Counted from the first letter of the stretch, positions 11,012 through 48,915 are shown. The stretch is 64,000 nt of DNA from Octopus bimaculoides (GCF_001194135.2 NC_068983.1:135480210-135544209), one strand, 5' to 3'. Made by a program: numbers and translations. The notes: generated from the sequence alone by a model not told the origin.

Positions 11012-11989
11012 TCATCTAGCTATATGCTTCTTTTTAACATTTACTAATTGTAAGTTGGATGAAGATAATGATATTGGTTCATAATTTGCACTAAACAAAC
11101 TAACAGGATAAGGCTTAGAATTCTCAGAATTTTTCAGATGTTGGAATTTATCACAACTTACTAGTCTACGAATTGATGTAGGAGTTATGTAGCCAACTGG
11201 ATGAGATTCTGAATGAAGTGAGAAATGAGGAGAGAGGGATGAAGATGATAATAATGATTGCTCAGTTTGCTGTATATCAGAATTGTGTTCAAAGTTATCC
11301 AAAGATGTATTATGAGAAAGCAAGCTTGACTGAGTTAAATCTGCATCAGAAATGTCTGACCCTTGTTGTGTTGACAAAAAGTCCTGGTATCCATATCGAT
11401 GATCATCTGGACCAATCAGTTCTACTTTGATTTGTGGTTTGTTAAACAGGTCATCTTCATGGTTACTGTTGATATCATCTTGTTCATTACTAGTATCAGA
11501 AATTTCTTGTTTCACAACTTTTCTTTTTATCTCTGTTGGAAATTTGCTGGAAAGTACATTGGAATTTTCCTCAAGATTACGGTTGTAAAGAGTGATAGGA
11601 ATTACTTGAGAAACAGGAGTGAAATTATCTTGGCATGTAATTTGAGTGTTTGTGACGTCTGAGATAAGTCCTGATGAAGAGCAAGGTTCAGTAAGTATTG
11701 ACTCCAACATATCTGTTGGTACTGTTACTGAATTTTCTGCTATTTTTAATTGGTTGTTACAAAGCTGATCAAAACCCTGCATGTCAAGACACTGGGCAAT
11801 AATTTTCAATTGCGACAGGATGTTTTTATCTAGTTCCAGCACACCATCATACATATACTCACAGAAAGCTAATAGTGCTTCTTCACTCACAGTGGAAGGG
11901 AATGTTACAGCAGGCAAGTCAGAATGAAAAGCATTGTAAAATACAGGTAACACTTTGGGACATACAGCTCCAAAGACAATTTGATGAAC
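11012..11989 (-). CDS. BTB/POZ-domain protein, last coding exon (C-terminal half of BTB plus acidic/Ser-rich tail)
   Basis: Acceptor ttttgcag at 11990-11991, phase 0. Reads VHQIVFGAVCPKV...EALLAFCEYMYDGVLEL...LKIIAQCLDMQGFDQLC. 978 nt open to TGA at 11012-11014. Confidence 0.9.
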   Translation of the reverse strand, partial: VHQIVFGAVCPKVLPVFYNAFHSDLPAVTFPSTVSEEALLAFCEYMYDGVLELDKNILSQLKIIAQCLDMQGFDQLCNNQLKIAENSVTVPTDMLESILTEPCSSSGLISDVTNTQITCQDNFTPVSQVIPITLYNRNLEENSNVLSSKFPTEIKRKVVKQEISDTSNEQDDINSNHEDDLFNKPQIKVELIGPDDHRYGYQDFLSTQQGSDISDADLTQSSLLSHNTSLDNFEHNSDIQQTEQSLLSSSSLSPHFSLHSESHPVGYITPTSIRRLVSCDKFQHLKNSENSKPYPVSLFSANYEPISLSSSNLQLVNVKKKHIAR

Positions 11990-12428
11990 CTGCAAAAATT
12001 AATAGAATGAAAACAAAAGATTAACTTATCACCAGAGAGAACATATTCCAATCAAATCCCATTTGCCTCAACAGTTCCAAATTGTAACTTCAGTAGTCTC
12101 CACCCACCAATAAAAATACATTAAAAGAAAAGCATTCTGTGGTCATCAAAAGTGTCATTATCTTCCACCTAATAGTGGTGGTAATCAACAAAACAGTAGA
12201 AAGGCAATGGCATAATAAATGTCATTCATATTATTTGCTTATTTCCATCCACACTGTTTTCCTTTCTTAGGTCTTTTCACTTCAACACTTTGCTCAGGCA
12301 TTCATATCTGGAGTTACTTAACTGTACTTATAACTTCCAACAAAATAACGAAATAAAAATAAACACTATTTTAATTAACTCTTCTTCCAGAGAAGAATCT
12401 ACAAATATAGTCTGAAATGCAAACTTAC

Positions 12429-12759
12429 CATAACACTAACTGTACCATTGCTGATATAAGCATCACACAACCGACCAGCTTTCCATAATGATGACATGTT
12501 TGACATAACAGATGACTGATGGTTTGGAACTACAAGCATACGTTTCTCTTTTTGGTGAGATACATCTATTGTTGGACTCATTTGCAACTGTTTCTCAGAT
12601 TTAGGAGCAGTTTGTAGTTTCTGAATATTTTTTGATGAAAAACTTTGATTTTTGGAAGAGCTACTCGAGCAATCTATTGGTTGGGATCTAGTATCAGTAG
12701 TTGATGATGAAACAGCAGCTGGTTTGTCAATAACATGAGTTTGACCAGCTGAAATAAAA
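12429..12759 (-). CDS. BTB/POZ-domain protein, internal exon (start of BTB)
   Basis: Acceptor ttttttactag (phase 2), donor ATG|GTAAGT (phase 0). Encodes NHQSSVMSNMSSLWKAGRLCDAYISNGTVSVM, which joins in frame to VHQIV. Confidence 0.85.
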
Positions 12760-13819
12760 CTAGTAAAAAAAAAATATATAAATAAATAAAAGTCAAACAA
12801 TTATTGGCAGAAAAAAAATCAAACCAAATCATTTTTGATAATTTTCTACATCTACACTAAAAGTTATTTTAATAAAGAAAAGCAAATAGAATTGTATGAG
12901 AATTTTAGATAAACTTTCAAAAAGTAAAACTAATATCAAAAGATTTTATATCATGAAATAGTAAACAATCCATCACACAAAGAGAACTAGAGCTAAAGAC
13001 AGCCTTAAAATAATTTGATTTCATCAATGAAGTAAAGGCTAGTGAAGAATTATTACAGGTTTTACTGGGCAAGGTTCATAACTCACTCTACTTGGCTTAG
13101 CTGACAATAAGATCCATGTCTTCTAAATTTAAACTCCTAGGATTAAAGCAACAAGAACCACTCCAGTGTATCAAGTGATACAACATTAAACAAACTACTA
13201 CTAAAAAGGAGCAAGAAAGTGTATAACAGACAGTTTTACTGTTTACTCATTTGCTTTGTTAATCTTAGCAGTTTAGTAGTAGAGAATGTTACTGTCCACT
13301 TCAGGGTTTAATTGTAAATAAATGTGGAATATTTAATATTTTTATTTTATTTATTTACTCTTTTGGTATTTTTTTACTGAAATATTCTTCAGGTTGATTT
13401 ATTGAAGACAAACAGCTGTAATATCTTTTCTATGAACATTAGCAATGTAAGTGAATGGATCAAATTTAATTAAAATAGGACATGGCCTCAGTTCATTAAG
13501 AGTCCATATTTACAACAACTGTTAGTAGTAACTATTTAGTCTTCAGTAGCTTGTAGGAAGATTTGAGCACTGCACTGTTAAAAATTTTCAGTCTAATATT
13601 CATTGCCCTATGAATTGTCTTGTCTAGAAATCCAGCATTTTCCTTTAACAACAGAACAAGATACACATTATTACCCATTTAGCCAGGAAGAAAGCAACTT
13701 AACTTTTAGCCATCTATGATTTTTTTCCCAATAGATTAATGGCATGAATAATATGAATACATCTAAAAAAAAAAAGACAAATTTAAATCAATTAGTTATG
13801 AAACTCTGAAATCACTCAC

Positions 13820-14010
13820 GGTTTAGAGAAGTTATGTTTTTTAGGAACTTTTGCAGGTGTTGAAAATGATTGGTTTGCATCTGATAAGCTATTGATGGAT
13901 TTTGATGCTGAGGAGGAAAGATTTTTCCGCCGGTGTTCCACATCTAACTTATTTAAAGAATATGAAGGAGTAATTTGTTGATGGGCTGATTTAATCACTT
14001 GTGATTTTAC
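13820..14010 (-). CDS. Internal coding exon of BTB gene (Ser/Lys-rich linker)
   Basis: Acceptor ttccttgtag, donor CC|GTGAGT. 191 nt, phase 0 to 2, open frame VKSQVIKSAHQQ...HNFSKP, matching the next exon's phase. Confidence 0.75.
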
Positions 14011-14880
14011 CTACAAGGAATAAAAGAAGTAAATGAAAATCAAAATGGTTGGTTGTGAATATTACTTAACTTCAACATACCTTTCAATACTGAATAAAAC
14101 TACTATCAGTAATTCTTTTTTCTCACAATACCTCATGTGTTGCCAGTTTCTAATCTGATTTGGGCATGATTTTAATTCCCTGATAACAATACTGACTGAC
14201 ATGTCACTAAAGACACTGGGGAAGGCATAATTTTCAGATCCCCAATTAAAAATCTCAATTCTTTATTTATGTAAAAGATGTTATTTAAAGAATATGGAAA
14301 CATTACTTGGCATTCCAAAAAACTTAAGGTTAATATTGAAGAAAAAACAATGTTATTTTTCACAAAAATCATAAGGGAAAAAATAAAAGATATGTTAGTT
14401 TCTATTAACATCTGTCATTGCTGGGAAGCATCACAGTGTGAAACACATTATGCTTTTCCAAAGAATTGCCTACCTGAACTCAAGTCTACAAATTTTATTA
14501 ATAGTACAATTTAAGTGCATGACTCTATACCATGTATGGGCAACCTGCAACCCTCGACAAGTTTCTAGGTTACTAATTTCATACTAAGACAAATAAAATC
14601 AAGAACTGCAAAAAATTCAGTGTAAAGCAGGCAAGTAATATTTCATGCATGTGTTTTATCATGTGGACCTTTCCCACCTGGAAATGGTATGATGTGGCCC
14701 CCAGTTGAGGAAAAGTTGCCCATCCCTGTTCTATACTAATATAGAAAAAGTACATGATTCCTTCAGTGTAAATGTGGAAGGGTTCATATAGGGCAGCAGA
14801 GTGCTTATATAACTTTTCAATTGGATGAAACCCTTTTAACACAGGCAGCTGCTACTGAGAAATTTTAATATTATTTTTAC

Positions 14881-14945
14881 CGGAAGTTGATTAGATGTAT
14901 AGAGTTCTGAAGCAGTTTCAAGAATCTTGTCATACTCATTGGAAC
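14881..14945 (-). CDS. Internal coding exon of BTB gene; phase-1 entry exon
   Basis: Acceptor aaatttcag, donor CCG|GTAAAA. 65 nt, phase 1 to 0, open frame (x)SNEYDKILETASELYTSNQLP. No in-frame ATG, so an upstream phase-1 donor is needed. Confidence 0.7.
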
Positions 14946-16528: not shown

Positions 16529-17153
16529 NNNNNNNNNNNNNNNNNNNNNNNNNNNNNNNNNNNNNNNNNNNNNNNNNNNNNNNNNNNNNNNNNNNNNNNN
16601 NNNNNNNNNNNNNNNNNNNNNNNNNNNNNNNNNNNNNNNNNNNNNNNNNNNNNNNNNNNNNNNNNNNNNNNNNNNNNNNNNNNNNNNNNNNNNNNNNNNN
16701 NNNNNNNNNNNNNNNNNNNNNNNNNNNNNNNNNNNNNNNNNNNNNNNNNNNNNNNNNNNNNNNNNNNNNNNNNNNNNNNNNNNNNNNNNNNNNNNNNNNN
16801 NNNNNNNNNNNNNNNNNNNNNNNNNNNNNNNNNNNNNNNNNNNNNNNNNNNNNNNNNNNNNNNNNNNNNNNNNNNNNNNNNNNNNNNNNNNNNNNNNNNN
16901 NNNNNNNNNNNNNNNNNNNNNNNNNNNNNNNNNNNNNNNNNNNNNNNNNNNNNNNNNNNNNNNNNNNNNNNNNNNNNNNNNNNNNNNNNNNNNNNNNNNN
17001 NNNNNNNNNNNNNNNNNNNNNNNNNNNNNNNNNNNNNNNNNNNNNNNNNNNNNNNNNNNNNNNNNNNNNNNNNNNNNNNNNNNNNNNNNNNNNNNNNNNN
17101 NNNNNNNNNNNNNNNNNNNNNNNNNNNNNNNNNNNNNNNNNNNNNNNNNNNNN
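16529..17153. other. Assembly gap (N run)
   Basis: Run of N. Confidence 1.
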
Positions 17154-17241
17154 TAAGACGACTTCGTAAATTTCCCCTCAAAATGTTTATTTCGTCTTAT
17201 ATTTAACGTATAAGACAAAGCTTCACACGAAATATAGCATG

Positions 17242-17781
17242 TTAGAGGACAGAAATTACAAATAAAAACGACAAAGGGATATAAAGAAAGTAATTACTTT
17301 TTTTACGTTGCATTAATTTAGAACGATGGGAATAAGTTATTTCGGTGTCAAGCTCTGCAGGTAATTTCTTCGCTAATTTGGTTCTCTTTCTCAATACTAA
17401 GTTATGTCTCTCCATGAATCGACTACACCATGAAGCGGTGGCTTTGAAGTCTTTACAGTCCTCTTGATTTTCTTTTGCCCACTCGAGTGCCATATTGCGG
17501 ATTTTATTTCTTGATATACCGTATCCATTTTTTCGATATTCGCAAACTATATCTGCTAAATAATTTTCTAAATTTGGCCAATGTGCACTACCTCTTCTCA
17601 TTGCACATTTGCTCTTAGGGATTTTCTTTAATATATCTTCTTTTAATCTCCAATCTCTCACCACCTTCTCCGTTACACCATATTCTCGTGCAGCAGCGCA
17701 ATTATTGTGCTTCTTAGCATATGCTATTACGTTCAACTTAAACCCAGCTTGGTATTTCCTTCGTGTAGGTGTTTGCGCCAT
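17242..17781 (-). CDS. pogo/Tigger-type transposase N-terminus: Brinker-type HTH plus CENP-B (Tc5) HTH; DDE domain absent
   Basis: RRKYQAGFKLNVIAYAKKHNNCAAAREYGVTEKVVRDW is Brinker DBD-like; HWPNLE...ISRNKIR...FKATASWCSRFMERHNLVLRKRT is CENP-B HTH-like. Similarity stops before the expected GNxDETP motif. TAAGACG/CGTCTTATA pogo-end-like motifs at 17154-17215. Confidence 0.8.
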   Translation of the reverse strand: MAQTPTRRKYQAGFKLNVIAYAKKHNNCAAAREYGVTEKVVRDWRLKEDILKKIPKSKCAMRRGSAHWPNLENYLADIVCEYRKNGYGISRNKIRNMALEWAKENQEDCKDFKATASWCSRFMERHNLVLRKRTKLAKKLPAELDTEITYSHRSKLMQRKKSNYFLYIPLSFLFVISVL

Positions 17782-18359
17782 GACGAGCCTTTATGATATC
17801 TTGAAGTCGTAGAAACAATATTTACAACGCATGTGACACCAAGATAACAACTAACAATCTCGCGCAAGCGCTATGAGTCTGATTCACCCAACCCAATTAC
17901 TGTAGACGTTAGACCGTCATTTCTAAGCTCTTCTCGGCGTTTAAGACGACGCATCACGATATCGTTTCCCCAGTTTTAAATACAGTGGTTAGTGTGCATT
18001 TTCACCACAGAACCACATCCTTTTAATTGAAAATTAAAATAATCTCGAAATAAAATAACAATGAAATATAAAAATAATCTCTAAACAAATTATTTTTTTT
18101 TCTTTTCTAATTTAAATAGTGCTACCTACCATATTCCCGGTGCCTTTATCTAGCGAGTAATAAATTAGTTTAATTTTAACTGGCAATAATTATAGAACAA
18201 GTATCAAAATATCTTTCATGAATTTATGGGTATCACCTATTTTAGAACTGAAGTCACAAGCCCTATAAGTAGGTACACATCTCAAGTTAAAACGATTCAG
18301 TCAAATAAATAGCCATACCAACAACATTCTCACATAATGAGTTTGTAAATTTTTTTTTA

Positions 18360-19496
18360 CTAACCAATAGGCATATCTTTCATTTGGAGGGCACGTCCAA
18401 ATAACAACTGGGTGTGATTAACGAAATTCAAACACATACTAGGCGTTATGACGGTTACACTTTCGTCAATCAACCTTTCCACAAATCTAAGTTTCCGTTC
18501 AGATTTTGATAATACATTTTGTGGATCACCTGCTGTCATTTCGGAAAGCTGATTGGCTTCCTTCTGTTTGAGTTGAGTCTTAATCACACTCCAGACACTC
18601 TCAAATGGATTTAACATGGGTGAATAAGGCGCAAGACGAAGAAGTGTTGCTCCTTCGAACTCACTTAAGACGTTTTCTAAATCCGAGTGGCAAGAGGCAT
18701 TGTCAATAACCATCACAATTTGTTCACACGAAGTACCATTGCCAATAACTTTTTGCAACAGGTCTCGTACCCATACACTGCACGAGTCACTCCGGTAAGT
18801 TCCTCTTATTCTTTGGAAATCGATCAATCCAGCTTGACAAAGAGCCCCAATCATATGGATAGTCGGACCTTTGGAAGAAGGCAGATGCGCAACTGCACGT
18901 GTTCCTTTCGTTAACCCTCCTTTACTTTTTCTAAGGAAAAGGTTGACATTTGACTTGCTGATATATACAAAGAACTTTCCTTCAGCAGATGATTTCATCA
19001 CATTCTCGATATACTCCTTCCTCAAAAGCTTGTTTTTGTGATTGTTGACTGTCTCTGGGCATAAATGTACTTGCTTCAATGAAATTATTCTTCCATCTAG
19101 ATGACTGGCTATAGTTTGTTCGGACACAATCAATCCATACTTTGAAAGTAAATGTTCGCAAAGATTCTTCAATGTTAATTGTGGACAATCGTTTAACCAC
19201 TCAATAAGTGACTCGATATGTTCATGCTCTATCTTCTTCACCTTATCACGGATACCTCCACGGTGCAAATGTGATGCACGATCTCTGCGTACCCAATTAT
19301 ATGCAGTTGTCTTCTTAACGCCATGTGCTGTAGCAATAGATTTCATATCTTTTCCTCGTTCAGCTGCAGACAGTACACGCTTTCGAGTTTCGAGTGCCGA
19401 CTTCTTGTATGGTCCTCGCTTGCTTCCTCGTTTGACACCTCGTGAACTAGCAGTACTTTCGAACTGACTTTCATTATCTGTAAGCAAACGTAACAT
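18360..19496 (-). CDS. IS630/Tc1-family transposase ORF (378 aa), intact frame, first catalytic Asp lost
   Basis: HTH region, then YISKSNVNL where DE(T/S) is expected, VIDNASCH, and LAPYSPMLNPFE (D-33-E spacing by my count). Perfect 16-bp inverted repeat AAATTAAAATAATCTC at 18031-18046 and 19627-19642. In-frame phase-1 acceptor tttgcttacag at 19478-19479. Confidence 0.85.
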   Translation of the reverse strand: MLRLLTDNESQFESTASSRGVKRGSKRGPYKKSALETRKRVLSAAERGKDMKSIATAHGVKKTTAYNWVRRDRASHLHRGGIRDKVKKIEHEHIESLIEWLNDCPQLTLKNLCEHLLSKYGLIVSEQTIASHLDGRIISLKQVHLCPETVNNHKNKLLRKEYIENVMKSSAEGKFFVYISKSNVNLFLRKSKGGLTKGTRAVAHLPSSKGPTIHMIGALCQAGLIDFQRIRGTYRSDSCSVWVRDLLQKVIGNGTSCEQIVMVIDNASCHSDLENVLSEFEGATLLRLAPYSPMLNPFESVWSVIKTQLKQKEANQLSEMTAGDPQNVLSKSERKLRFVERLIDESVTVITPSMCLNFVNHTQLLFGRALQMKDMPIG

Positions 19497-20385
19497 TGTA
19501 GGAGTAAGTTAAATGATGCAATGTATTCCAATTTAAAACTACTCAACGTAAAATCAAGCAGTTCAAAACACAAACGTCCGCTATGTTTTTATAAAAAAAA
19601 ACAAAAAAAACTATTTAATTTGCTCTGAGATTATTTTAATTTGTTTTGAGGTTATTTTAATCTCGAAGCAAATTAAAATAATTTGCATTATCTCGCTTCG
19701 AGAATATTTAAAGTTGCACTTGAAAGGATTTACACTTTAACATGTCCGGCAATATAAGTGATCAAAATTCTCAAAAAGGAATCGGTTTATTAATGCAAGT
19801 AACAAAACATTATTTAAATGAAGAAGTCATAATTATACTCTATTATATATATACATATATATATTTATTTTTCACGGATGTAATATTCACCCCTCTCCAC
19901 CTAACTATGTGTATAGAGTAGATATGAGCTTTGGCTGCTATTTCTAAAAACCAAATGACTGCGTAGAGGCTCTCCTTTTCGCTCGGGTTTTCTCGTGATT
20001 CCGTTTTACTAAGTAGTAAATCATCGTTTTATGGTATCCATTTAGTTACCGATCGTCTTTGCGAAATAGAAACCAGTCACAGGACGCAAACTTCTGATCA
20101 TTTAGTCGCTATTTTAATGACTCTACTAGCTTCGCTTCCAACGAAAGTATGGAGAGGGAGAAAAGTAATTTACTTCAGAGAAAGAAACGAAGTTATTTTA
20201 CACAGTTTGAGCAGTTAATTTTCAGAAAGCAATTTTAAATAAATAACATTAATTTTGAGACATTCTGATTGAATTAGAAAGAAAGTACATTAAAACAGAT
20301 ATAAACTTATAATTTCCTCTTGTTTGGCGTCCGCGGAGGAATTCTTTTCTTTTGAATCTGTGCTACGGTCTACTTGTTTTGTTGG

Positions 20386-21164
20386 NNNNNNNNNNNNNNN
20401 NNNNNNNNNNNNNNNNNNNNNNNNNNNNNNNNNNNNNNNNNNNNNNNNNNNNNNNNNNNNNNNNNNNNNNNNNNNNNNNNNNNNNNNNNNNNNNNNNNNN
20501 NNNNNNNNNNNNNNNNNNNNNNNNNNNNNNNNNNNNNNNNNNNNNNNNNNNNNNNNNNNNNNNNNNNNNNNNNNNNNNNNNNNNNNNNNNNNNNNNNNNN
20601 NNNNNNNNNNNNNNNNNNNNNNNNNNNNNNNNNNNNNNNNNNNNNNNNNNNNNNNNNNNNNNNNNNNNNNNNNNNNNNNNNNNNNNNNNNNNNNNNNNNN
20701 NNNNNNNNNNNNNNNNNNNNNNNNNNNNNNNNNNNNNNNNNNNNNNNNNNNNNNNNNNNNNNNNNNNNNNNNNNNNNNNNNNNNNNNNNNNNNNNNNNNN
20801 NNNNNNNNNNNNNNNNNNNNNNNNNNNNNNNNNNNNNNNNNNNNNNNNNNNNNNNNNNNNNNNNNNNNNNNNNNNNNNNNNNNNNNNNNNNNNNNNNNNN
20901 NNNNNNNNNNNNNNNNNNNNNNNNNNNNNNNNNNNNNNNNNNNNNNNNNNNNNNNNNNNNNNNNNNNNNNNNNNNNNNNNNNNNNNNNNNNNNNNNNNNN
21001 NNNNNNNNNNNNNNNNNNNNNNNNNNNNNNNNNNNNNNNNNNNNNNNNNNNNNNNNNNNNNNNNNNNNNNNNNNNNNNNNNNNNNNNNNNNNNNNNNNNN
21101 NNNNNNNNNNNNNNNNNNNNNNNNNNNNNNNNNNNNNNNNNNNNNNNNNNNNNNNNNNNNNNNN
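20386..21164. other. Assembly gap (N run), possibly hiding an exon
   Basis: Run of N; see findings for flank evidence. Confidence 1.
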
Positions 21165-22838: not shown

Positions 22839-22849
22839 TGTTAAAAGCA

Positions 22850-25134: not shown

Positions 25135-26285
25135 CATCATCATCGTTTAACGTCCGTTTTCCATGCTGGCATGGGTTGGACGGTTCGACTGAGGTCTGGA
25201 GAGCTAGTGGCTGCACCAGACTCCAATCTGATCTGGCAATGTTTCTGCAGCTACATGCCCTTCCTAACGTCAACCACTCCGAGAGTGTAGTAGGTGCTTT
25301 TTACGTACCACTGGCACAGGAGCCAGCCAGGCGGGCCTGGCATCAAACACATTCGGACAGTGCTTTTTATGTGCTACTGGCATGGGAGCCAGTCATGGAG
25401 TACTGGTATCAGCCACATTTGGATGATGCTTTTTATGTGCCACTGGCACAGGAACCAGTCAGGGGCTACTGGCATTGGACACGTTCAGATGGTGCTTTTT
25501 ATGTGCCACCAGCATGGGAGACAGTCAGACAGACCTGACATTGACCACATTCGGATGGTGCTTTTTACATGCCACTGGCATTGGAGCCAGTCTGGGGGTA
25601 CTGGCATTGGCCACATTCAGTTGGTGGTTTTTATATGCCACCAGCACGGGAGCCAGTCAGGCGGATCTGGCATTGACCACGTTCGGATGATGCTTTTTAC
25701 GTGCCACTGGCACGGGAGTCAGTCAGGGGGAACTGGCCATAGCTATGATATTTGTTTTACCTGACTCAACAGGTCTTCTCAAGCAAATCATATCGCCTGA
25801 CACATTAGGGGTATTCTTAACAGGGCCAGACATGTGTGGCTGCGATCTCACTTTAGTTGTGAGGTTTTCTCAATCAGCATATCTAGAAAGGTCCAGGTCT
25901 CCTGTCATTGCCCCCACTACAGACTTTGTTACCTAGGTAGCGGAAGCTATTAACTACTTCAAGTTTCTTCTGCAGGCATGTGATGGAATCTGTTTTCTGT
26001 ACATCTTCAGTGTTTATTACCCCAGTGTATCTGCCACACACAAAAACTATTTTCCCAGTTAGCCTTCCTTTGATATTGCTGCATTTTTTATGTGTCTGTA
26101 GCTTGTACTGGGTACATCATATGGAGCTTCTACTCATGCCTTTTCTACAGATCAAGCAGGGCCATCAACCTGAAGGGGATTGTGATTTGACAGCCTTCCT
26201 ACTTATTAAGGCCTTGGTTTTTGCTAGGTTAACCCTAAGGCCCTTCAATTCTAGACCTTGATTCCACACCCTAAACTTCGTCTCC
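25135..26285 (-). mobile_element. 5'-truncated RTE-type LINE with tandem repeats in its 3' UTR
   Basis: (GAT)n tail at 25135. 25930-26285 is the reverse complement of the 40430-40770 family. Confidence 0.8.
25294..25745. repeat. 66-bp tandem repeat, about 7 diverged units
   Basis: Units start at 25294, 25360, 25426, 25492, 25558, 25624 and 25690 (exact 66-bp period). Confidence 0.9.
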
Positions 26286-28300
26286 ATTTCTGGTAGTGAC
26301 TCATCCAATAAATTTTCTTGAGTCAGAAAAAAAGCAGGCACTCAGCTATTAGATATTATAGAGGTATATTATTATTATTTATAATAGCTATGTCTGATGA
26401 TTGTTACATTTGCCTTTCCAATTTTGGCATGAAACCATTCAGTAACATTAATTGGTTGTCATGAGACAAAAATATAATGTAAAGAAGAAGAGCAGCAGTG
26501 GTGGTGGTGGCGGCGGAGCATCATAGCCATGTTTTGAGAGGAATTTAGGGTTTGAATAATTCATCTCTGGAAACATTATCTTAACCCTTATTCAGGGACC
26601 TTTTGAGTGAGATGGGCTACTTAACCTGAAGAAAATTCTAACTGGGCCCCACCTGCAAGGTCATGCACTGTTTATCTTGATATGAGATCACAATGTTGTG
26701 CACATATGGTTGTGATGCATGTGCCTGATGTACCCTTATCTGACAGGTAGTCATGATGGGTATGTTGGGCTTCATATATTTATACCCCAGTGTCAGTTTG
26801 ATGGCATGCACTGCTCTCTCACACAATAATATCTTTTATTTTCCACCAGGGTGACGGATGAAGGGGACAATATAAAGACAAAAATAAAGTGTAAAGGTTT
26901 ACATATAATGCAATGATTAAAAAAATGTATACTTGCTATACATTACAAAATGTGAGGTATACATAGTATATGACAGTAAGAGAGAAAAAAAATGGTGATA
27001 GTGATGGTGTCCATCATACAAGATTCCCCTGAATACAAAAAACAAGTGCCTTCTCGAACTCCTTTCCTCCAATTCACAGGTAGTTTTCCTGTTTGCATCA
27101 CCATATATGTATATAGGAGGTGGGAGAGATGTGCCAGGTATTTGTAAACAAACTTTAGTGGGTCACAAATGGAAGGTGACCTTACACAGTATTATGTGGC
27201 ATGTGCCAAATTTTAACTTTTTCTTTCAAACTTATCAAAATGTGTGTGCGCTTGTATGCCAGTGCTGCCTGACTGACTCCCGTGCCTTTTTTATTGGATT
27301 CCAGTTCAGACACATTCATATAATTATAGGATGAAAGAGTAGTTTCAAGTTTGAAACCTACTATATGGATGGACATTTTTCTAAATGCTGAAGTATATTT
27401 AAGCAACTATGTGCAATATGTGTGTCACTGGGAGAAAAAAAGTGTTTTATATATGTATGTATTCCTGCTTGGGAAAAAGTACAAGCTCAAAGTTCTAGGA
27501 AGAACTATCTATATTTTCTTGTTGCAATGTAAGCAGTATCAATTCATCTTGGACCACATTACTATACAAGAGTACTTTTACTGGGTGCTTGCTTCATTTA
27601 AAATCAGATCAATTGCATGATTATGCTGCACCCCACATGAAGTAATATGTTCATATTTATCATCCATTGTCAAGCCTCTCTTATATCCTATTTTTCTTTG
27701 CTGTGTATATTGCCATCTTATTTTGTCAGACCAATAACTATTTATCAAACACATAACCTTCTTGAAGTTATAGATGTTTTGATAATTTCCATGAGGAATT
27801 TCCCACTTATATAATGAAATATTGTATTTTATTCTATTATACCAAATTTATATTTATGTATACAATTGTCATCTAAGAAATTGCTTTCTGAGCAAGTCAT
27901 GTCTCTACAGTACAATATGGATCCTATCGATTTATTTCAATCTCCAATACTTTATAATTATTTAATGCTGAAATATGAAGGCAAATCTTGATTGTATACT
28001 TATTAGTAAGTTGCTATAAGTTATAACAAAAAGACATCCACATCCAGACAAAAAGGGCAATCTCTGAGTACAGTGTGCCACTTTCACGTTTGTTGATACC
28101 AGTTTGGCAACTGCAAATCTCTTCATCTGCCCTGTACAATAGCCAAATTGGCCGTCCCCGTCCTTAATTGACTACAGCAAACAAGTATATTTAATTGGTC
28201 ACCCTGTGCGATTCGCGTACCCTACGCTACATCACTATTTTGCTATTTGCAATGACATGTTTTTGTAACTACTGAAAAGTTTTCCAAATGTACTATTCAC

Positions 28301-28387: not shown

Positions 28388-29567
28388 CTACCATGATCAA
28401 TAATACAGTAATTAAACGCATGTCATAATAATGACATTCTATCATACGAATGCTTATGAGCAATTGTATTTCCTATAATATTGAACAGTGTTTTCTGTTC
28501 TATATAGTACTTCTAGAAAACATTTCTTCGAGACTTCAATCACGTTCTCTCAATTAGACTCTTGCAAGGTTTGTGGAAATATTTCATTTATTTTGTATAA
28601 GACGTTCGTTTAATTGAATCCACCGGTAACAGTCGGGTCCTCGGAACCCAATAGCAAATACAGAACTCGTAGAAACATACAACTCTTTAATTATTCTGGT
28701 TTTGTCTACTTTATATTATTTAATTATTTTCATTTATATCAATGCTATTTTATAGAAAAAAAGACATTTTTCTTACTGAAACAATAAACGATATCCAACT
28801 GCACGCCATCTCCGGTATATTTTGCAAATTGCAATAAGCCTTTTTCTTACAAACAACACTAAAAGGCTGCGAAATATCGAGTTTCTCTTCACAAGCCATG
28901 CAGTGAATACGTGCTTCACCCATTCAATATGCTGAACGTTGTTTACGCAGTCCGGTGCTTAGCTAGTCAAGTAATAACGAGTTTTGTGAAAGTGAAAATG
29001 GTACTTTATACTGTAACATCGCTCAAATTTATATTTCATTTTGAACAACATAAAATAAAATTTTCTGATCACCGATGAAATTACACCAAAACTTTGAAAT
29101 AAAGATTTTTTTGCAATCCACTACGAATAATTGGCAGCCGACTGCCAAAGCTGAACTTTAAAAAAATGAAATGGGTACGTTATATTCAAAGATCGCCAAT
29201 CAAAAATATTAGTTGGTGAACATTCACACAATAATTTCTATTTTACATTTCTGTTGGAATAATAAACGCCTAATTTTACCTCAATCAAAAAATTTAAAAA
29301 ATTTAATGTTGTTACAAGAGTCGAGTTACGTCCCATTATACTCAAACGACAAAACTTTAGACTCACTTCTATCGGTTACGCTCCAAAAAAATCCCCTAAG
29401 CTAAATAAGTTCGTACGGAGACGTCGACGAAAAAAATTCCTCCGCGCCCACAAAACAAGGAAAATATACAATTTAGTAATAGAAAGTTAACGAAACATAG
29501 ATATAGATTAACTCGTTTACGAGCATGAGTTTGTGTTTTAAGGAAGCTAGGGAATAAACAATCGTAC

Positions 29568-29820
29568 CTTGGATTGGAAGATTCAGAGTCGGAATGCTGC
29601 TGTGCAGTAAGCTATTCTGGTTATCAACAAAATGGAGACTACAAATGCTATGCTCCCTAGTTATGTGCTTCACGTCGTTGGCATCGAGGGGGTCGTAACC
29701 AGCCAATCTAACCCAGATTGTTCGGAGCTGTATGTTGTCCCAAGGTAGTAGAAAAAATGTTATTGACTTGTCTATGCGACTGTTCGAGTGACAGCCTTTA
29801 ACAATACAGTCGGACGGCAT
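29568..29820 (-). CDS. THAP zinc-finger domain, first coding exon
   Basis: MPSDCIVKGC...TFFLLPWD..LRTIWV...SICSLHF...LLHSSIPTLNLP fits the C2CH THAP signature with conserved P, W, F and P. Donor CAAG|GTACGA, phase 1. Confidence 0.85.
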
Positions 29821-30012
29821 AATAGAAATTCATTTAAACCCTGCCGCATTACAAAACATTATGAAAGTTGAGAAAATGTCCTAAGTTGGAGACTAGTTGT
29901 TTCCAATGAATATAAAAGTGAGATAATAACATTGTTGCCTTATAAGTATTAAATAACAGATTTTTTTTTGTATAGCGGAGCTAAGCGTAAAGTATGGAAG
30001 GCAATAAGTATA

Positions 30013-30020
30013 TCACGTGA
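30013..30020. promoter_or_regulatory. Palindromic E-box (GTCACGTGAT) about 200 bp upstream of the THAP ATG
   Basis: TCACGTGA in a CpG-retaining stretch; function is inferred only. Confidence 0.3.
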
Positions 30021-30100
30021 CTGTCGGTGAGCTAAGTTACGGAATACAAATTATAATCAAATAGGTAGCGTGTAGGTAATGCTTAGTTAGTTAAGAAAAT

Positions 30101-32111: not shown

Positions 32112-32616
32112 ATGGATATAAAGCAGCTTGATGATTCAGCTATCGAAGTACTTACTGTGCCTGAGTTAAAGAAATATTTAAGATTATATGGACAGTATGT
32201 TACTGGAAGAAAGGCGGANNNNNNNNNNNNNNNNNNNNNNNNNNNNNNNNNNNNNNNNNNNNNNNNNNNNNNNNNNNNNNNNNNNNNNNNNNNGAAGCTT
32301 ATATCTCCTTTCGGTGAAGTATTGCCTGATCTAAAGATCTTTGTAAGTTGCCGAATTTCACAGATAATGACATAATTACCTCGTGTTACGGATGAAATCA
32401 AAGCAACAGTTAAGGAGTGGCATATTTTACCACGACAGACACGTACACAGCAACGAATACCACGATGTGAGTGAAAGCTGCTCTCACTGTATTGTCCAGT
32501 GTCTGGTAATCCCTTCGATACCGACATCAAACCAAAAAAAGAATCCTGACCACAGAGTGTGGGTAATTATGTCAAATGTCACTGGCAATGTGCATTCAGC
32601 TGATTGCAACTGTTAA
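32112..32616 (+). pseudogene. SAP-domain plus SWIM-like protein fragment, frameshifted and truncated (probable DNA-transposon accessory gene, ISL2EU/Kolobok type)
   Basis: LTVPELKKYLRLYGQYVTGRKA is SAP-like. DRHVHS...CSHC...VWVIMSNVTGNVHSADCNC is the start of a SWIM CxC motif. Frame changes after the gap, and the ORF stops at the Hero LINE junction. Confidence 0.6.
32219..32293. other. Assembly gap (N run)
   Basis: Run of N. Confidence 1.
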
Positions 32617-38131: not shown

Positions 38132-38215
38132 NNNNNNNNNNNNNNNNNNNNNNNNNNNNNNNNNNNNNNNNNNNNNNNNNNNNNNNNNNNNNNNNNNNNN
38201 NNNNNNNNNNNNNNN
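38132..38215. other. Assembly gap (N run)
   Basis: Run of N. Confidence 1.
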
Positions 38216-38307: not shown

Positions 38308-38377
38308 GGTGACTATCCAGAAGGTAGTTGCTGTATATATTTTGGGATGGGACCACTTTTTCCCAGACTTTTTTTAT
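38308..38377 (-). CDS. Candidate phase 0-to-1 adaptor exon linking the CG-1-like exon to the BTB exons
   Basis: Acceptor tatatattttag, donor ACC|GTAAGT. 70 nt open frame IKKVWEKVVPSQNIYSNYLLDSH. Caveat: may sit in repeat-derived sequence. Confidence 0.4.
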
Positions 38378-40105: not shown

Positions 40106-40129
40106 ATGCTTTCCATAGTGTTAGCTTCT

Positions 40130-41180
40130 AGATCATCAACATTGTCTTGTAAAGAGAGTCTGCTGAATGTCAACCCAACAGAAGGACCAGCTATCCAAAT
40201 TGACAGTACCTTGGTAGATAAAGCAATTAAGGGTATGAAGACAGGGATCACCACAGAGATGCTTAAAATATCTGGCGGTGTCAGCTATAGTCTAGTCACC
40301 CATATGGTCAATCAGGTGATACATGAAGGAGTCATACCCATTGACAGCACCATAGTCAACCGAGAGCTTCTCTATGCTGATAACTTTGCTCTAATAGCTG
40401 AATTACTATCAGAACTAAGGAGAAGTTTCAGATGTGGAAGCAAGGTCTAGAATTAAAGGGCCTTAGAGTCAATCTAGTAAAAACCAAAGTCTTAATAAGT
40501 AGGAAGGCAGACAAACCACAAATCCCTTCAGGTAGATGGCCCTGCTCAGTCTGTAGAAAAGGTGTAGATAGAAACTCCATAAGATGTACCCGGTGTAAGC
40601 TATGGACACATAAGAGATGCAGCAATATCAAAGGAAGGCTAACTGGGAAGATAGTTTTTGTGTGTGGCAAATGTTCAGGAGCAGTAAACACTGAAAATGT
40701 GCAGACAACAGCTTCCGTCACATCCCAGGAGGAAAAAAACTATAAGTAGTTGATAGCTTTTGTTAATAATGTAGTAACGCCTGCGCATGCGTAGAATTAA
40801 ACAAGCAAGCGTTTCCCGCTCAATTCATTCTCTTTTACGCTGGCCAGCGATTGAGCATGGACGTGTGTTTAATAGCTGTCCCTACATCTTTCGGTCTTAT
40901 ACTCGACAGCTCGTTATTCTCACCTCTAAAGATGTATAACTAAAGATATGTATGTTTTACCAAGTAAATAAATGTTGTTTAAGTTGTTTAGTCTGGAGTT
41001 CAGCGTTCCGTCTATTTCTTTAATTTTATAGTAGAAAGTCAGGTATACAATCTAAAGATGTATAACCCACTTTCTACTAAAATACAAATAATAAATGTTA
41101 CCTAGGTAACCAAGTCAGTAGCAGGGGGTGGTTGCTCTGAGAGTGTAGCTGCTAGAATAAGAATAGCCTGGGCAAAGTTC
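40130..41180 (+). mobile_element. RTE-type LINE fragment (RT, PHD-like Cys/His finger), interrupted by a 330-bp insertion
   Basis: LLYADNFAL..WKQGLELKGLRVNLVKTK, then CSVC..CTRC....H..C..CGKC. Resumes at 41096 with YLGNQVSS.GGCSESVAARIRIAWAKF. Confidence 0.8.
40766..41095. mobile_element. Unclassified insertion flanked by 5-bp duplication TGTTA
   Basis: TGTTA at 40761-40765 and 41096-41100. Removing one copy restores the LINE sequence seen at 25930-25960. Confidence 0.7.
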
Positions 41181-43130: not shown

Positions 43131-44512
43131 ACAAAATACTGCTAAGACAGCATTAAATATTATAACACTAATTTAACTAAGTCTGAAAAGTTCTGTGTTA
43201 AAAATATTGTGAGAAGTGGAGAATCTAATATTTCTGGTTCTTGCACTTGCCCTTCATCTGAAAATGAGGAAGTGAGATAAAATGGTGTTGCTACAATGTT
43301 TACTTACCACAACCAAAAAGACAAGACTAATTCTTCTATTTCTCAATCTCAGGTAGAGGGCAATGGACATAAATTTTAAATTCTTCACTCCTCACAACAA
43401 TTGAACTTATCAAACTTTTCCATCAGTTTCCATGGAATCCAGATTTTAACTTCTTATAGAAAAAATGGGATTCTCACAGCTAGGATACTTTTGATCATAA
43501 ACCTGCTTAATTAAGGCTGATTGAAAACTAAACAGCAGCTGAATTAGTAAAAAGTGGCATCCATTAACTCTTCTCATTTCCTCTCATTGCCTGTTTGTTT
43601 CCCCATTTCTATGCTTCAATCCTATTTTATAGCCATTTAATTTTCATAATCCCTTCACAGATGAAGGAGCCTAGTCCATATAGTTATAATTCATTTCTGC
43701 TACACCGACTTATTCTAATTCATAAACTCTATTGAACAAGATCTTACCAATACAGACTGGTTCATGTATAACAGATAATTGGAGTGAGTTTAGTGGCATG
43801 AAATGTTCGGTTTGTAACAAAGTTTCAAACCATGACTTTTGGACAAATAATCTCAAACCTTGATCATTAACCCTGTATAAACTCAATAATAATAAAACAA
43901 TTATTTTATGGCAATTACTAATTTCACGCCTCCACTGTAGTTTTACAGCTTAACAAATATGAATTATTTTCTGTTTCTGCATTGTTGCAAGGAAAATAAA
44001 TTTATAAATAGATTCCATTGCATAAGTCAAATAATAAATGCTTTTCTTAAGCTGAAAACTGTCAGTTAACTACAAAACAATCTGCAAGTTGACATATCAG
44101 AAATTTCAACCGAGACCCAATAACCTAAGTAATGAATAAATCTCACTACTACATTTTTTTTTTTTTCAGATTGCATCAATTCCATTTTATTTATCAATAA
44201 TCATTTTATAAGACTTGAAGAGATGGATAACAAAGTTACTTCAAGCAAGATCTAAACTCTGAAATAAGGATATGAGCTAAATGTAATAAATAGCAATATA
44301 CTGTTGTCTGAAACAAACGTCACTGGTGATTTCATCAGTTCTTTAATCCAATGATTTCTGAATGACATACATAGCTTAGGTTAATATATAATAGTATTAA
44401 AATATTCTACAAGTGAAAACACCCTAACAGAAGTGACTAATCAGGTCTGGAAATTGTTGATTAAAATTATCTTTCTGCAAAAGACTGTCATCTTTCCAAA
44501 ATCAATAAAACA

Positions 44513-44655
44513 TTATCATCATCGTTTAACGTCCATTTTCCATGCTGGCATGGTTTGGACGGTTTGACTGAGGACTGGCAAGCCAGAAGGCTGCACCAGG
44601 CTCCAATCTGATCTGGCAAAGTTTCTACAGCTGGATGCCCTTCCCAACGCCATGT
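44513..44655 (-). mobile_element. RTE-type LINE 3' end
   Basis: catcatcgtttaacgtcc...gctggatgcccttccc as at 5600-5740. Confidence 0.75.
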
Positions 44656-44930: not shown

Positions 44931-46043
44931 AATACAATTACAACCTTACAATACCCTCAACCACTATCAAGGATGAGATCTTACAAGAGCTGACAGTATT
45001 TTAGTAAGTGAATACACAATTACTACAGATTGAGTCAACAATATGATGCCTGAGTAAGAAGGAGAATGGTAAAGGTGTTACTGAATGGTCTTAAATCAAT
45101 AATAACTATGATTATATCAACTATTCCACAGTACTGCTTTAAGTCCCTTGCTATTCTTGCTATATATAAATGATATCTTCATTAATCCCATCCTCTTCAT
45201 TAAAATGGCTTGCAGATGATGTCTTGATGTGCAAACCTAAAATACTAACACTGATTATCATTCTTTTTAACAAAGTCTCGTCTATCATCATTAGAAGCAT
45301 AGGTCAATACATGGCAAATAAAATCCAGTACCTCCAGAGATGAAGTAGCAATTAGCCTCTTGGAATATTGGAATATGCCCTACTCATACTAGCTTGATGA
45401 TATACACCTAGATAGAATTAGCTAATTGAAGATAGCTCAGTGTCATCATCACTCAAAAACTGATTTTGGACTAAAGTTTACCTCAATAATAAAAGAATGT
45501 AATAAAAGTTTACACATATTTACGAGGTCTCTTTCTTATAAAACACAACTAAGATCTTTAGTGATAGAAAGGAGACTGAAAGGTTCATGTGCACAAAATC
45601 TTGCAAGACCCACTGACAGTAGATCATGAAAAGATATTGAAAACAAACATGGCATATACAATTTTTTGTCTCTTTTTTTCAGGAACAGCTTTATGTATTG
45701 ATTAACAATCAACAGCATTGGAAAGCATAAAGATTAAAGTTGTAGTTGAGAAAAAGTTGGCTGACACAAAGGACTGGAAGCAATCTGAATATTGGAAAAG
45801 AGTTACCAGTATCATGACGCTTTGCACTGAGTATCAAAATGCTAACATTATGACTGCTGCTCAATGCCTGTTGAAAACTGTAAGGGCTGTAAGACGTGAC
45901 ATGGACAGCTGCAACAGAGACTATGGAGTCATGGCTAGCAGATCTTCAGGCTCAATTCAGACTGCTATATGAAGCTGCTGAAGACTGTGGTCAATCCCTG
46001 GATGGAGAGGGTTGCTGCTGGAAGGAGAATATGGCTCTTTGCC

Positions 46044-46499
46044 ATACTCTCTTTACTCTCTTTTACTCTTTTACTTGTTTCAGTCATTTCACTTCGGCCA
46101 TGCTGGAGCACCGCCTTTAGTCGAGCAAATCGACCCCAGGACTTATTCTTTGTAAGCCTAGTACTTATTCTATCGGTCTCTTTTGCNNNNNNNNNNGACT
46201 TATTCTTTGTAAGCCTAGTACTTATTCTATCGGTCTCTTTTGCCGAACCGCTAATTGACGGGGACATAAGCACACCAGCATCGGTTGTCAAGCAATGCTA
46301 GGGGGGACAAACACACAAATATATATACATATATATGACGGGTTTCTTTCAGTTTCCATCTACCAAATCCACTCACAAGGCTTTGGTCGGCCCGAGGTTA
46401 TAGTAGAAGATACTTGCCCAAGATGCCACGCAGTGGGACTGAACCCGGAACCATGTGGTTGGTAAGCAAGCTACTTACCACACAGCCACTCCAGCGCCT
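46044..46499 (-). mobile_element. Full-length tRNA-derived SINE
   Basis: Minus-strand head AGGCGCTGGAGTGGCTGTGTGGT (A box) and GGTTCAGTCCC (B box), a CTTGGGCAAG central box, and an (AGAGTAAA)-type tail. Interrupted by the 10-N gap at 46187-46196. Confidence 0.85.
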
Positions 46500-46502
46500 C
46501 CA

Positions 46503-46835
46503 GAAATATTAAAAAAGTAGTTATTGGAGAATTTCTACAACTTCGCCATCCCCAATTTCTGATCTGCTAATTACTCCAATTGTAATCCTGCAGATTACTA
46601 TGTGTGGGGCACCATTGAGACAGACAGACACCAACTGCTCTGCCTGCAACATGAGGCCAAGCTGGTGGCCAAGATTAAGGAGATGTTTGAAGATCTTCAC
46701 AGGGACACTGAAGAATGCACAAGTCAGGTTCTGGAGCCTTTTTTTTGAGGTCGTGGTGAAACCTGAGAGCAGCTACTTTAAGTAAACTGTTATCTCCCAG
46801 GCATAATCTAGTTGATATGTTTTCTTTTCCTTTTA
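46503..46835 (+). mobile_element. Tc1/mariner (maT/DD37D-like) transposase C-terminal remnant
   Basis: YSNCNPADYYVWGTIE..TNCSAC...LVAKIKEMFEDL...RFWS.FEVVVKPESSYFK* matches the SPDxNPxDYxxW...RxEAVIxAxGxYFE end motif. Confidence 0.65.
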
Positions 46836-48402
46836 TGCAAACTATCAAATTTAGAAAGAACATCTTGCAGTATCAGTACTGGTATTTTAATTCGCAGAGA
46901 AAAATCTGATTATAAAAACAAGCATTCATTCTTAAATCGCATGTTTAACAGTGTACTTAAAAGGAATATACAATTTCCACAACCAATCACTAATGGCAGA
47001 ATATAACTAAAACATCGCTCTTTCCATCGCTAGACTGAGAACACTTGTTCTACGATTAAGTATGACTTCTGATACAGACCTAGTAACTTACGAGTTAAAA
47101 CTGAGTAGAGAACAGAAGTGTAGAATAAAGCATCATAAATGTTAATGGTATTATAATTTACGATGCCCATATCGTGAAATGATTTTTTAAATGCATCGTG
47201 GACAAATTGACACCACTTCAGTTAGGGAACTAAATAACTGACAATTGTTTTGGTAAGTAAAGCATTGAGCCAGATGCCTTACCATTTGGGCCAACTTAAT
47301 TCATAAATAAACTTCTGTTTTACAAGCGTACAGTTTACAAAGGGTGGAGATGGATCTGTTGGAAACAACCTAAAGAGGTCCAGTCAAGCATACATTTATT
47401 TTTTAGCTTACAATTTTTTTTTATTTCTCGTGCGATTTCATATAAATTAAAATTAAATACAGCCAGTTTTAAAATTTGAAAAATAAAATTAAACTATCTA
47501 AAGTTCTAATTGCTTGGTAAGCATTAAAAACCAAGTTGTAATAGTAGGCGTGTCAAGTTTGCTAAGAGTTCACTTCCTGTTTCGGAGGGAGGGAACCGGC
47601 GAAAAACTGTACAATTCAGAACCATGAGTTATTAAACACGGAGCATTTATTCTCCCTCTCCCTCAACATGAACTCACCTCACATAGTGATAAAAATGGAA
47701 TAAAAATATAGGAAGTCGTGGCATTGATACATTTCCAAAGAGCATTAACGCTCTCAGTAAAAAAAAAAAAGTCATACCAATTAGGAATATAGGCCAGACA
47801 CAACATTAGCAGAAAACAGCTCTGCGATGTTTATAATAGTACTTTATATATATCTCTCTATGAGCCTGCTTACAATATATAACTGCATTCCTGACTATAA
47901 TGTATTTCTATCTGTACTTAAGTAAATTTTAATTATATTGTGCTCGAGCACATATTTACATTTAAAAACAATTGAGTCAAGATCGATGATCAGTTGTTTC
48001 TCTCTTTATTACAAATACACTTGTTTTCAATGCCGAGAACCAGTTAGGAGGAACTAAACCTAACTCCATATATTACATGGTCCTTCGTTTGAAAGATCTT
48101 TAAAAGATTTGGAACTGTTACAGAACTATCATATTCCTCTCCCCAATACTCCCGAGAAAAAAAAACATGAACATAAAACACGATTTCTGAAATATATCTG
48201 CAATATATTGCACTCGAATAGAAAATCAAATTAACTTATGATCTTTTTATTACACTCTATACACTGAATAATGTAAGTTTTTGTTGCCCATCAATAATAA
48301 AGATATACGGGTTGCTTCTCCATTCCGTTGTGTATATTCTTTCAAAATAAGTTTTCAATTCTTACAATTCAAACAAGTAACCCAAATTTAAGTTAAACTT
48401 AC

Positions 48403-48915
48403 CTCATATATATCTGCTTTCTTCATAACGTGTCCATTATTCCTTTCAAATAAATCTTTCTTTCTAATAAGTTGTTCAGGCAAAGGTACGATAGATCGAA
48501 CTGAATGCGAAGAATGTCGGCTTTTTTTTCTGCTGGGAGCAACCGATGTATCCGTACACAGTTTTTCATCACCGATATAATGAATAACAACTTTCTGATC
48601 ACTGTCCAGTAATCTGTAGACATGCTTTTGAAAATTGTTTTTTTGTCCTTCTTTGGTCATTAAATAGAAGAAACTTTTCCGTAAAGCTGGGCGTCTGTTG
48701 AGGGACATAGTCGATGTACCTCTGTTCGACCAACGATAGCCATCTGTTCGCCAATTATCCAAATACATACGAAGTCTAGGTTGGAATAAATAGATTTCTC
48801 CCCCGGCAGGACGATTTGGAATTTTTGATACAAAGTTCGAACTTGGAAGACATAAAAGCTTCATAGCTTCTATTGTCTCAAGTCTTGTATATCTTCTTCT
48901 TGTATAAGGCTCCAT
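48403..48915 (-). CDS. CG-1 (CAMTA-type)-like DNA-binding domain exon, probably MULE-transposon derived
   Basis: MEPYTRRRY...PNRPAGGEIYLF...DNWRTDGYRWSNRG...LRKSFFYL...FQKHVYRL...VVIHYIGDE. 513 nt open from the ATG to perfect donor GAG|GTAAGT (phase 0). Possible non-coding upstream exon ends at CAGG|GTAAAT near 49454. Confidence 0.75.

Follow-up and report, generated by a model that had tools for sequence, protein, structure and literature searches.

Predicted alternative THAP and CG-1-like heads on a common BTB body at an Octopus bimaculoides locus

The 64,000-nucleotide (nt) stretch of Octopus bimaculoides DNA analyzed here (GCF_001194135.2 NC_068983.1:135480210-135544209; the whole stretch is hereafter called the window) carries a minus-strand locus between positions 11012 and 48915, in which two upstream exons, one encoding a THAP domain and the other a CG-1-like domain, can each be joined in frame to one downstream set of exons encoding a BTB domain. 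Judged from its sequence, this is one gene with coding capacity for two open isoforms, which have an identical BTB body and carry either the THAP or the CG-1-like head but never both. The body consists of four exons (14945-14881, 14010-13820, 12759-12429, and 11989-11012) that form an open BTB chain of 1,565 nt, entered in phase 1, without a start codon, and ending in a TGA stop at 11012. A first-pass annotation of this DNA had described such a start-less phase-1 chain from 14945, with no C-terminal zinc fingers in its product, which the exon chain and a Pfam scan reproduce, as well as four intact open reading frames (ORFs) upstream on the same strand, which we confirm as CG-1, THAP, BrkDBD plus HTH_Tnp_Tc5, and DDE_3. 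Its splice arithmetic is right for the CG-1 exon (513 + 70 + 1,565 = 2,148 nt) and for a pogo-type module (475 or 484 nt, giving 2,040 or 2,049 nt), with the frames open to 11012. For the THAP exon, 253 + 1,565 = 1,818 nt is likewise an open frame, but the optional 87-nt exon that had been added is without support: the intron contains, by chance, 14 open segments of 87 nt bounded by AG and GT, none of them is conserved in Argonauta, and the THAP isoform of Octopus sinensis does without such an exon.

The acceptor common to both heads opens shared exon A (14881..14945, minus strand, 65 nt, phase-1 entry); it reads tttcag/GTTCCAATGAG and is kept in Argonauta, and the exon product SNEYDKILE forms the first residues common to the two O. 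sinensis isoforms described below (P0001 and P0002). Exon B (13820..14010, minus strand, 191 nt) encodes linker, exon C (12429..12759, minus strand, 331 nt) encodes linker and the first part of the BTB domain, and exon D (11012..11989, minus strand) encodes the remainder of the BTB, a low-complexity tail in which the motifs IKVE..GPDD and KPYPVSLF are conserved, and the stop codon. The junction between exons B and C is in frame only via the upstream acceptor tactag at 12759, while the stronger-looking acceptor tttcag at 12748 breaks the frame; at the protein level, P0001 contains FSKPFISAGQTH and the Argonauta protein (P0003) contains FPKQFTSLGQIH. On the joined body, Pfam detects BTB as the sole domain, split over exons C and D by the last intron, and no zinc fingers. 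The joined domain scores 26.6 to 28.9 bits (cut-off, 20.5 bits) and covers profile positions 3 to 107 of 110, a complete BTB domain, and its nearest matches among solved sequences are the BTBs of ZBTB17, ZBTB9, ZBTB18, PLZF, and KLHL proteins (E = 1e-5 to 4e-3). A side observation concerns the tail (11012-11450), where two short motifs are common to the otherwise divergent tails of paralogues. The first, [IL]K[VI]E..GPD(D/E), resembles the SUMO site consensus, the second, KPYP[VI]SLF, lies near the C-terminus, and both are candidate interaction motifs.

The THAP head is encoded by an alternative first coding exon at 29568..29820 (minus strand, 253 nt, ATG at 29820, donor CAAG/GTACGA), within an ORF that spans 29473-29820 and scores 35.6 to 38.5 bits against Pfam THAP (cut-off, 23.9 bits). 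This exon corresponds to residues 1 to 85 of P0001, and with the body it gives 1,818 nt and a protein of 605 amino acids (aa). Its product, a THAP zinc finger, conforms to the C2CH metal-ligand pattern C-x2-4-C-x35-50-C-x2-H with the conserved P and F and a C-terminal PT[IL], and the window, Argonauta, O. sinensis, and two paralogues all agree at residues C5, C10, C60, H63, F22, P26, and P77-T78-L79. Only 12 nt before the THAP ATG, the frame is closed by a TGA, with no AG between the two; the exon can thus serve only as a first coding exon, and the THAP and CG-1 heads never occur in one protein of this gene.

The first coding exon of the long isoform, encoding the CG-1-like head, lies at 48403..48915 (minus strand, 513 nt, ATG at 48915, donor GAG/GTAAGT after 48403), within an ORF spanning 48388-48996. 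It matches Pfam CG-1 (PF03859) at 33.7 to 36.9 bits over profile positions 21 to 114 of 116, above the cut-off of 23.5 bits, and is 98% identical to residues 1 to 172 of P0002. A 70-nt adaptor exon at 38308..38377 (minus strand, ttttag acceptor, GTAAGT donor), encoding IKKVWEKVVPSQNIYSNYLLDSH-R, converts phase 0 into phase 1; it equals the segment IKKVWEKVVPSQSIYSNYLLDSHR of P0002 (isoform X2 of O. sinensis) and has an Argonauta counterpart at about 13191-13271 of the locus sequence (L001). CG-1 exon, adaptor, and body together give 2,148 nt and a protein of 715 aa, in which Pfam finds only CG-1 and BTB, with the other parts of CAMTA proteins (TIG/IPT, ankyrin, and IQ) being absent. In the intron between the CG-1 and adaptor exons, we also observe a conserved 85-nt block (47491-47575, matching Argonauta L001 11892-11978) with the core AAGTGAACTC...TGACACGCC.ACTATT, free of splice sites and ORFs, which may be a regulatory element.

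When the body was searched against 5.8 billion protein clusters, the best matches were the NCBI models of LOC115209547 from O. sinensis (labelled O. vulgaris), of which X1 (P0001, 609 aa) is THAP plus BTB and X2 (P0002, 719 aa) is CG-1 plus BTB. The two isoforms have 524 C-terminal residues in common and unique heads of 85 and 195 residues, and their junctions, ...LNLPIQ/GSNEYDK... and ...ADIFE/IKKVWEKVVPSQSIYSNYLLDSHR/SNEYDK..., are exactly those obtained from the splice sites of the window. The window-derived proteins of 715 and 605 aa are 98.2% and 97.7% identical to X2 and X1, respectively, and Pfam recognizes CG-1 plus BTB and THAP plus BTB in them, each above the curated cut-offs; paralogues compared between O. 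bimaculoides and O. sinensis are 8 to 10% different, which indicates that the window DNA belongs to a species very closely related to O. sinensis.

The gap-free locus of Argonauta hians (L001) carries the CG-1 exon, the adaptor, the THAP exon, and exons A to D in the same order as the window. Its annotation lists a CG-1 plus BTB protein only (722 aa), with the THAP exon being present in the DNA but unannotated (L001 15775-16027); this exon is also 253 nt long and ends CAAG/GTACGAT, and the frame past the donor is not conserved between window and Argonauta (indel, different stops). Nei-Gojobori estimates of the ratio of nonsynonymous to synonymous divergence (omega) between window and Argonauta are 0.10 for the CG-1 exon (synonymous divergence, dS, 0.82), 0.09 for the THAP exon (dS 1.18), 0.10 for the BTB part of the last exon (dS 1.02), and 0.24 to 0.29 for linker and tail (exon C 0.29, tail 0.24; dS 0.7 to 0.8). 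The synteny and selection check that had been proposed for the modules thus turned out in favor of the CG-1, THAP, and body exons, all syntenic and constrained in Argonauta. Given the conserved order, THAP exon length and donor, low omega, and conserved THAP ligands, both heads are old, constrained coding exons of the gene, kept since at least the ancestor of Octopus and Argonauta. In cuttlefish-type proteins (P0018 and P0071), we note that the CG-1 exon seems to run on into MVSGARKKPGTSEV, and an Acanthosepion model has the MVSGARKKPGTSEV segment followed by a THAP-like C-terminal half (CSNHF...PTLNI) and then BTB, which hints at CG-1 and a THAP remnant in one transcript in decapodiform relatives; another decapodiform transcript (P0004) is 5'-truncated and uninformative on the head.

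Five assembly gaps fall within the range (16529-17153, 20386-21164, 32219-32293, 38132-38215, and 46187-46196), the fourth lying 92 nt downstream of the adaptor exon. Because all of them are intronic, and because the exons flanking them have the order and strand found in the O. sinensis proteins and the Argonauta locus, they leave the gene structure unaffected.

The same build recurs in octopod paralogues. O. bimaculoides LOC106872008 has three isoforms, with two different pogo-type heads (CENP-B_N plus HTH_Tc5) and one STPR head, and the same three isoforms were annotated independently for O. sinensis LOC115209617, while the head of O. sinensis LOC115209549 is either THAP plus CG-1-like or a pogo helix-turn-helix (HTH). 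The isoforms of each gene have 471 to 524 identical C-terminal residues, so that exclusive heads on a common BTB are found at two paralogous loci too. In the genome, the first exons of LOC106872008 lie at positions 10001, 18148, and 19141 of its locus sequence (L002), with the common exons starting from 20957, and since two further STPR plus BTB genes flank this locus, the genes form a tandem cluster. One paralogue pogo head (P0008) still retains, at its end, the beginning of the pogo DDE region (FNVDETDLLWKRRPTR). Intronless Logan contigs encode THAP plus CG-1-like plus BTB (901 aa) and STPR plus BTB (507 aa), which shows that fusions of head and BTB exist as spliced RNA, in this case from paralogues and not from the window gene.

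Two further ORFs lie in the intron between the THAP exon and the body. A pogo-type repeat unit (17154..18169, minus strand) carries a DNA-binding-domain-only ORF at 17781-17242 (BrkDBD plus HTH_Tnp_Tc5), which ends 89 nt before the gap at 17153. Since the downstream part of the unit runs into this gap, the DNA-binding-only state of the ORF is inseparable from missing sequence; outside the gap, no DDE_1 remnant was found anywhere in the window. The second is an intact Tc1/IS630-like transposase ORF (18360..19496, minus strand, 378 aa, DDE_3 in Pfam). This transposase had been called catalytically altered, and an alignment bears that out, as its first catalytic Asp motif reads ISKS, with Ser for Asp, versus VDES or VDKS in seven homologues. 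Its best relative among the 5.8 billion clusters is 57% identical and has no BTB link, and no exact copy of the protein is on record elsewhere; such a combination of an intact frame, Ser for the catalytic Asp, and no close relative is not what a copy in simple decay usually shows. The inverted repeats located at 18022-18118 and 19590-19685 were considered as Tc1 ends, a reading that we dropped because their motif tttcgagattat, which belongs to the pogo-bearing unit, also occurs in a Logan contig carrying that unit (L004). Both ORFs had been proposed as modules of the gene. This did not hold up, since neither has a counterpart in the Argonauta locus, neither occurs in any BTB protein or model found, and the pogo ORF sits in a repeat unit found elsewhere, so that they look like lineage-specific transposon insertions. 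The neighboring transposons had been described as riddled with stops, for which the ORF list of the window is the basis here, and Pfam gives no match at E <= 0.01 for mariner-like fragments located at 51-52 kb and 55-56 kb.

Taken together, the locus is probably one minus-strand gene, the orthologue of LOC115209547, with two alternative heads on one BTB body and with the pogo and Tc1-like ORFs as insertions. The inverted design put forward in the first-pass annotation, in which alternative N-terminal modules feed a common BTB body, therefore stands for the CG-1 and THAP exons, whose junctions are those of X2 and X1, and is not supported for pogo and Tc1. The 715-aa form would start at the CG-1-like exon (48.9 kb) and pass via the 70-nt adaptor into 14945, and the 605-aa form would start at the THAP exon (29.8 kb), most likely from a promoter of its own, and be spliced to the same phase-1 acceptor at 14945. 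Both would carry the common body of about 520 residues, with its linker, ZBTB-type BTB, and low-complexity tail with short motifs, so that the first coding exon used would amount to a choice of DNA-binding head. Going by the domain families, the product would be a nuclear BTB protein whose head most likely binds DNA, each head a different motif, and whose BTB pairs or recruits partners; one locus would then provide for two target specificities, the effector part being common to both. The similarity to dimeric ZBTB-type BTBs suggests that the BTB dimerises and that isoforms, perhaps also paralogues, may pair. The gene would belong to an octopod tandem family of like build, with THAP, CG-1-like, pogo-HTH, and STPR heads.

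Several observations bear on how the heads are started. A conserved non-coding block of 68 nt (29983..30050, minus strand) lies 165 to 230 nt upstream of the THAP ATG, contains TCACGTGA, and is 78% identical to Argonauta L001 15577-15643 amid otherwise unalignable sequence, which makes it a candidate promoter or 5' untranslated region (5'UTR) element of the THAP isoform. Two more conserved non-coding blocks (49697-49789 and 50075-50201, minus strand) lie 0.8 to 1.3 kb upstream of the CG-1 ATG, with blastn matches to Argonauta L001 9546-9638 and 8933-9211, and are candidates for the promoter or 5'UTR of the long isoform. Separate conserved blocks upstream of each head would fit two promoters.

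That the heads are instead chosen by alternative splicing from a single upstream promoter with a non-coding 5' exon strikes us as fairly unlikely. In Argonauta, the CG-1 exon is internal and preceded by an acceptor, so that an upstream exon exists there, and both species have AG dinucleotides 24 to 31 nt before the THAP ATG. These AG sites, however, have poor polypyrimidine tracts, the 68-nt block with its CACGTG core resembles a proximal promoter in lying some 200 nt upstream of the THAP ATG, and the heads of the paralogues, too, are each encoded by a first coding exon that has an ATG of its own. We regard it as highly improbable that only the CG-1 form is real, the THAP exon then being either a relic or a small gene in its own right, and X1 an annotation artefact. 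Such a reading would agree with the Argonauta annotation, which lists just the CG-1 form, but constraint on the THAP exon equals that on the BTB, the exon has kept its length and donor whereas the frame read through past the donor has not been kept, and intronless transcript contigs joining THAP to BTB exist for a paralogue. A few points nevertheless weigh against our two-headed gene as set out above. The basis for the isoforms is automatic Gnomon models of a sister species together with conservation, the junction of exons B and C depends on the weaker acceptor at 12759, a common non-coding 5' exon would also be compatible with the data, we infer DNA binding and BTB pairing from domain families only, and the pogo ORF shows a degree of constraint that is unexpected for a dead intronic transposon.

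A further reading, which we consider distinctly unlikely, makes the pogo ORF (17781-17242) a third head that was captured recently and is spliced from a donor at 17307 or 17298 to 14945, a case of transposase capture still under way. The ORF is intact, has both HTH domains, lies on the gene strand in the intron next to the acceptor, and offers two GT donors in phase, and first exons of pogo origin that stop soon after the second HTH are indeed in use among the paralogues. Yet the chance of an in-frame donor is 1 in 3, so that the in-frame arithmetic alone carries little weight, the downstream part is lost in the gap, the ORF is only about 21% identical to the pogo heads domesticated in the paralogues, and homology to full pogo transposases extends past both donors. 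Lobster, turtle, and whipworm have pogo elements related to the ORF (64 to 67% identity), none with a BTB. Just one close relative was found among the 5.8 billion clusters (P0019, 89% identical, from identical Logan contigs in several runs), a number that does not point to a high-copy family, and this relative retains both GT sites. Against this relative (P0019/L004), the first 474 nt of the ORF have an omega of 0.23 (dS 0.22), with the flanks of the unit being 13 to 20% diverged from L004; this points to selection on a truncated pogo transposase ORF. The Logan contigs (L004 to L006) are, however, collinear with window positions 18169-17154 at 85%, including 390 nt of upstream non-coding sequence and through both proposed donors, and for that reason look like a repeat unit or unspliced copy; the head and tail of L004 have no other match in the window. 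No such isoform is present in O. sinensis, even though paralogues there have three each, and neither database search returned a protein joining BrkDBD to BTB.

Beyond the two-headed gene, we entertain more tentatively, and with considerable doubt, the broader proposal that the cephalopod tandem family as a whole is an inverted version of the Drosophila genes lola and mod(mdg4), with mutually exclusive heads from at least four unrelated and mostly transposon-type families (THAP, MULE-type CG-1-like, pogo HTH, and STPR), separate promoters, and BTB pairing, and with new heads still being tried, the pogo ORF being a capture in progress. If this were true, pairing of isoforms and paralogues could lead to combinatorial DNA recognition. 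In lola and mod(mdg4), as here, one set of BTB exons is common to isoforms that differ in their DNA-binding exon, and the common BTB could let isoforms pair. The Drosophila genes have their BTB exons 5' and their variable exons 3', partly joined by trans-splicing, whereas here each head is a first coding exon at the 5' end, equipped with its own ATG, and the BTB occupies a central position. The lola arrangement of an N-terminal BTB with alternative 3' exons was not found at this locus, where the variable exons lie 5' on the same strand. The Drosophila genes also have dozens of zinc-finger or FLYWCH variants, in contrast to two or three heads per gene here, which come from unrelated superfamilies (THAP, CG-1-like, pogo HTH, and STPR), and only here is the diversity also spread over tandem paralogues.

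As to where the CG-1-like head came from, HMMER, run exhaustively over 1.84 billion representatives, recovered 339 relatives of the domain, about 59 of which were scanned with Pfam. None of these approximately 59 has the CAMTA architecture. Instead, 9 of the 39 longer relatives contain the transposase core of Mutator-like elements (MULEs), in the order N-terminal CG-1-like, MULE, and SWIM (e.g., P0107, P0108, P0116, P0123, and P0164), and other relatives, which come from annelids, bivalves, fishes, and a hydrozoan, combine CG-1-like with FLYWCH, C2H2, or an N-terminal BTB. An AlphaFold model of the head has a core with a predicted local distance difference test score above 90, and its best PDB matches are NAC and WRKY DNA-binding domains, so that the modeled fold resembles the WRKY/NAC type; MULE transposases use folds of this class. 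Through its MULE relatives, the CG-1-like head is a DNA-binding domain of a type carried by transposases. The first-pass annotation had called the modules transposon-derived, which is defensible for the CG-1-like head on account of these relatives; for THAP it reflects the established link of this domain to the P-element. In this sense both exons encode transposon-type domains, with putative rather than traced descent from any particular transposon. A literature search found no paper linking CG-1 domains with MULE transposases, and this link, together with the WRKY/NAC-like fold, bears on the origin of the CG-1 domain of CAMTA proteins. CAMTA proteins are the founders of the CG-1 domain, whose Pfam profile the present head matches above the cut-off, but the gene described here, unlike CAMTA, has no TIG, ankyrin, or IQ.

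Reuse of transposase domains in host regulators has precedents. The plant factors FHY3 and FAR1 come from MULE transposases and have kept the transposase core and SWIM. Their DNA-binding domain is of WRKY type, and, as here, a MULE-type domain of WRKY/NAC fold serves in a host regulator, but the octopus locus retains no more than the DNA-binding domain, in fusion with a BTB. In KRABINER, SETMAR, and CSB-PGBD3, the transposase was captured downstream of host exons; here, in contrast, the first coding exon supplies the transposon-type domain, ahead of the host part, and one body is served by several unrelated heads. The transposase-capture fusions described by Cosby et al. (10.1101/2020.05.07.082677) have, as predicted for this gene, a transposase-type DNA-binding domain spliced to a host protein-interaction or effector domain and, as observed here, evolve under purifying selection; the text of that study contains neither BTB nor the terms alternative first exon or alternative promoter. 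Compared with such captured-transposase fusions, the THAP and CG-1-like heads are at least as old as the ancestor of Octopus and Argonauta and are free of flanking transposon remnants.

Mukherjee and Moroz (2023, PMC10027918) reported that Octopus THAP and CENPB proteins carry a BTB, which they treated as a transposon component, without describing isoforms, alternative first exons, or CG-1 or STPR heads; these proteins probably belong to the same O. bimaculoides gene family as the gene described here. Apart from that study, a literature search found no paper combining THAP, BTB, and cephalopods. The earlier remark that no example had been described thus needs qualification, as the gene itself is not new, its isoforms already being automatic RefSeq models, and the combination of THAP or CENPB with BTB had been noted; it is the architecture as a system that appears undescribed. 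What the architecture suggests is that a regulator may gain DNA targets through added first exons with ready-made DNA-binding domains while keeping one dimerisation and effector body. Transposase capture, known so far chiefly from vertebrates, would thereby reach cephalopods and the 5' ends of genes. Its presence in both Octopus and Argonauta and its repetition in a tandem family are indications of a maintained strategy rather than an accident. Cephalopods have expanded regulatory gene families, and BTB proteins with interchangeable heads would be a concrete source of lineage-specific regulatory wiring.

The remainder of the window was also inspected for other features, with Rfam giving no match anywhere in it. 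A 66-nt tandem repeat in 6.7 copies occupies 25293-25737; its unit derives from a SINE-like (short interspersed element-like) repeat that is also present at 37-200, 5588-5754, and 44504-44652 and in many copies in the Argonauta locus. Fragments of a non-LTR (non-long terminal repeat) retrotransposon ORF with a PHD-like finger lie in an intron at 40106-40749, and a related stretch lies at 26170-26289, with both containing GLELKGLRVNL. Upstream of the BTB gene, at 62659-64000 (up to the window end), a stretch of 1.37 kb is 81.6% identical to Argonauta L001 379-1710, with synonymous sites between the two being near saturation; it has no ORF above 100 aa and is in conserved synteny, and it appears to be a strongly conserved non-coding region, perhaps the UTR of a neighboring gene.

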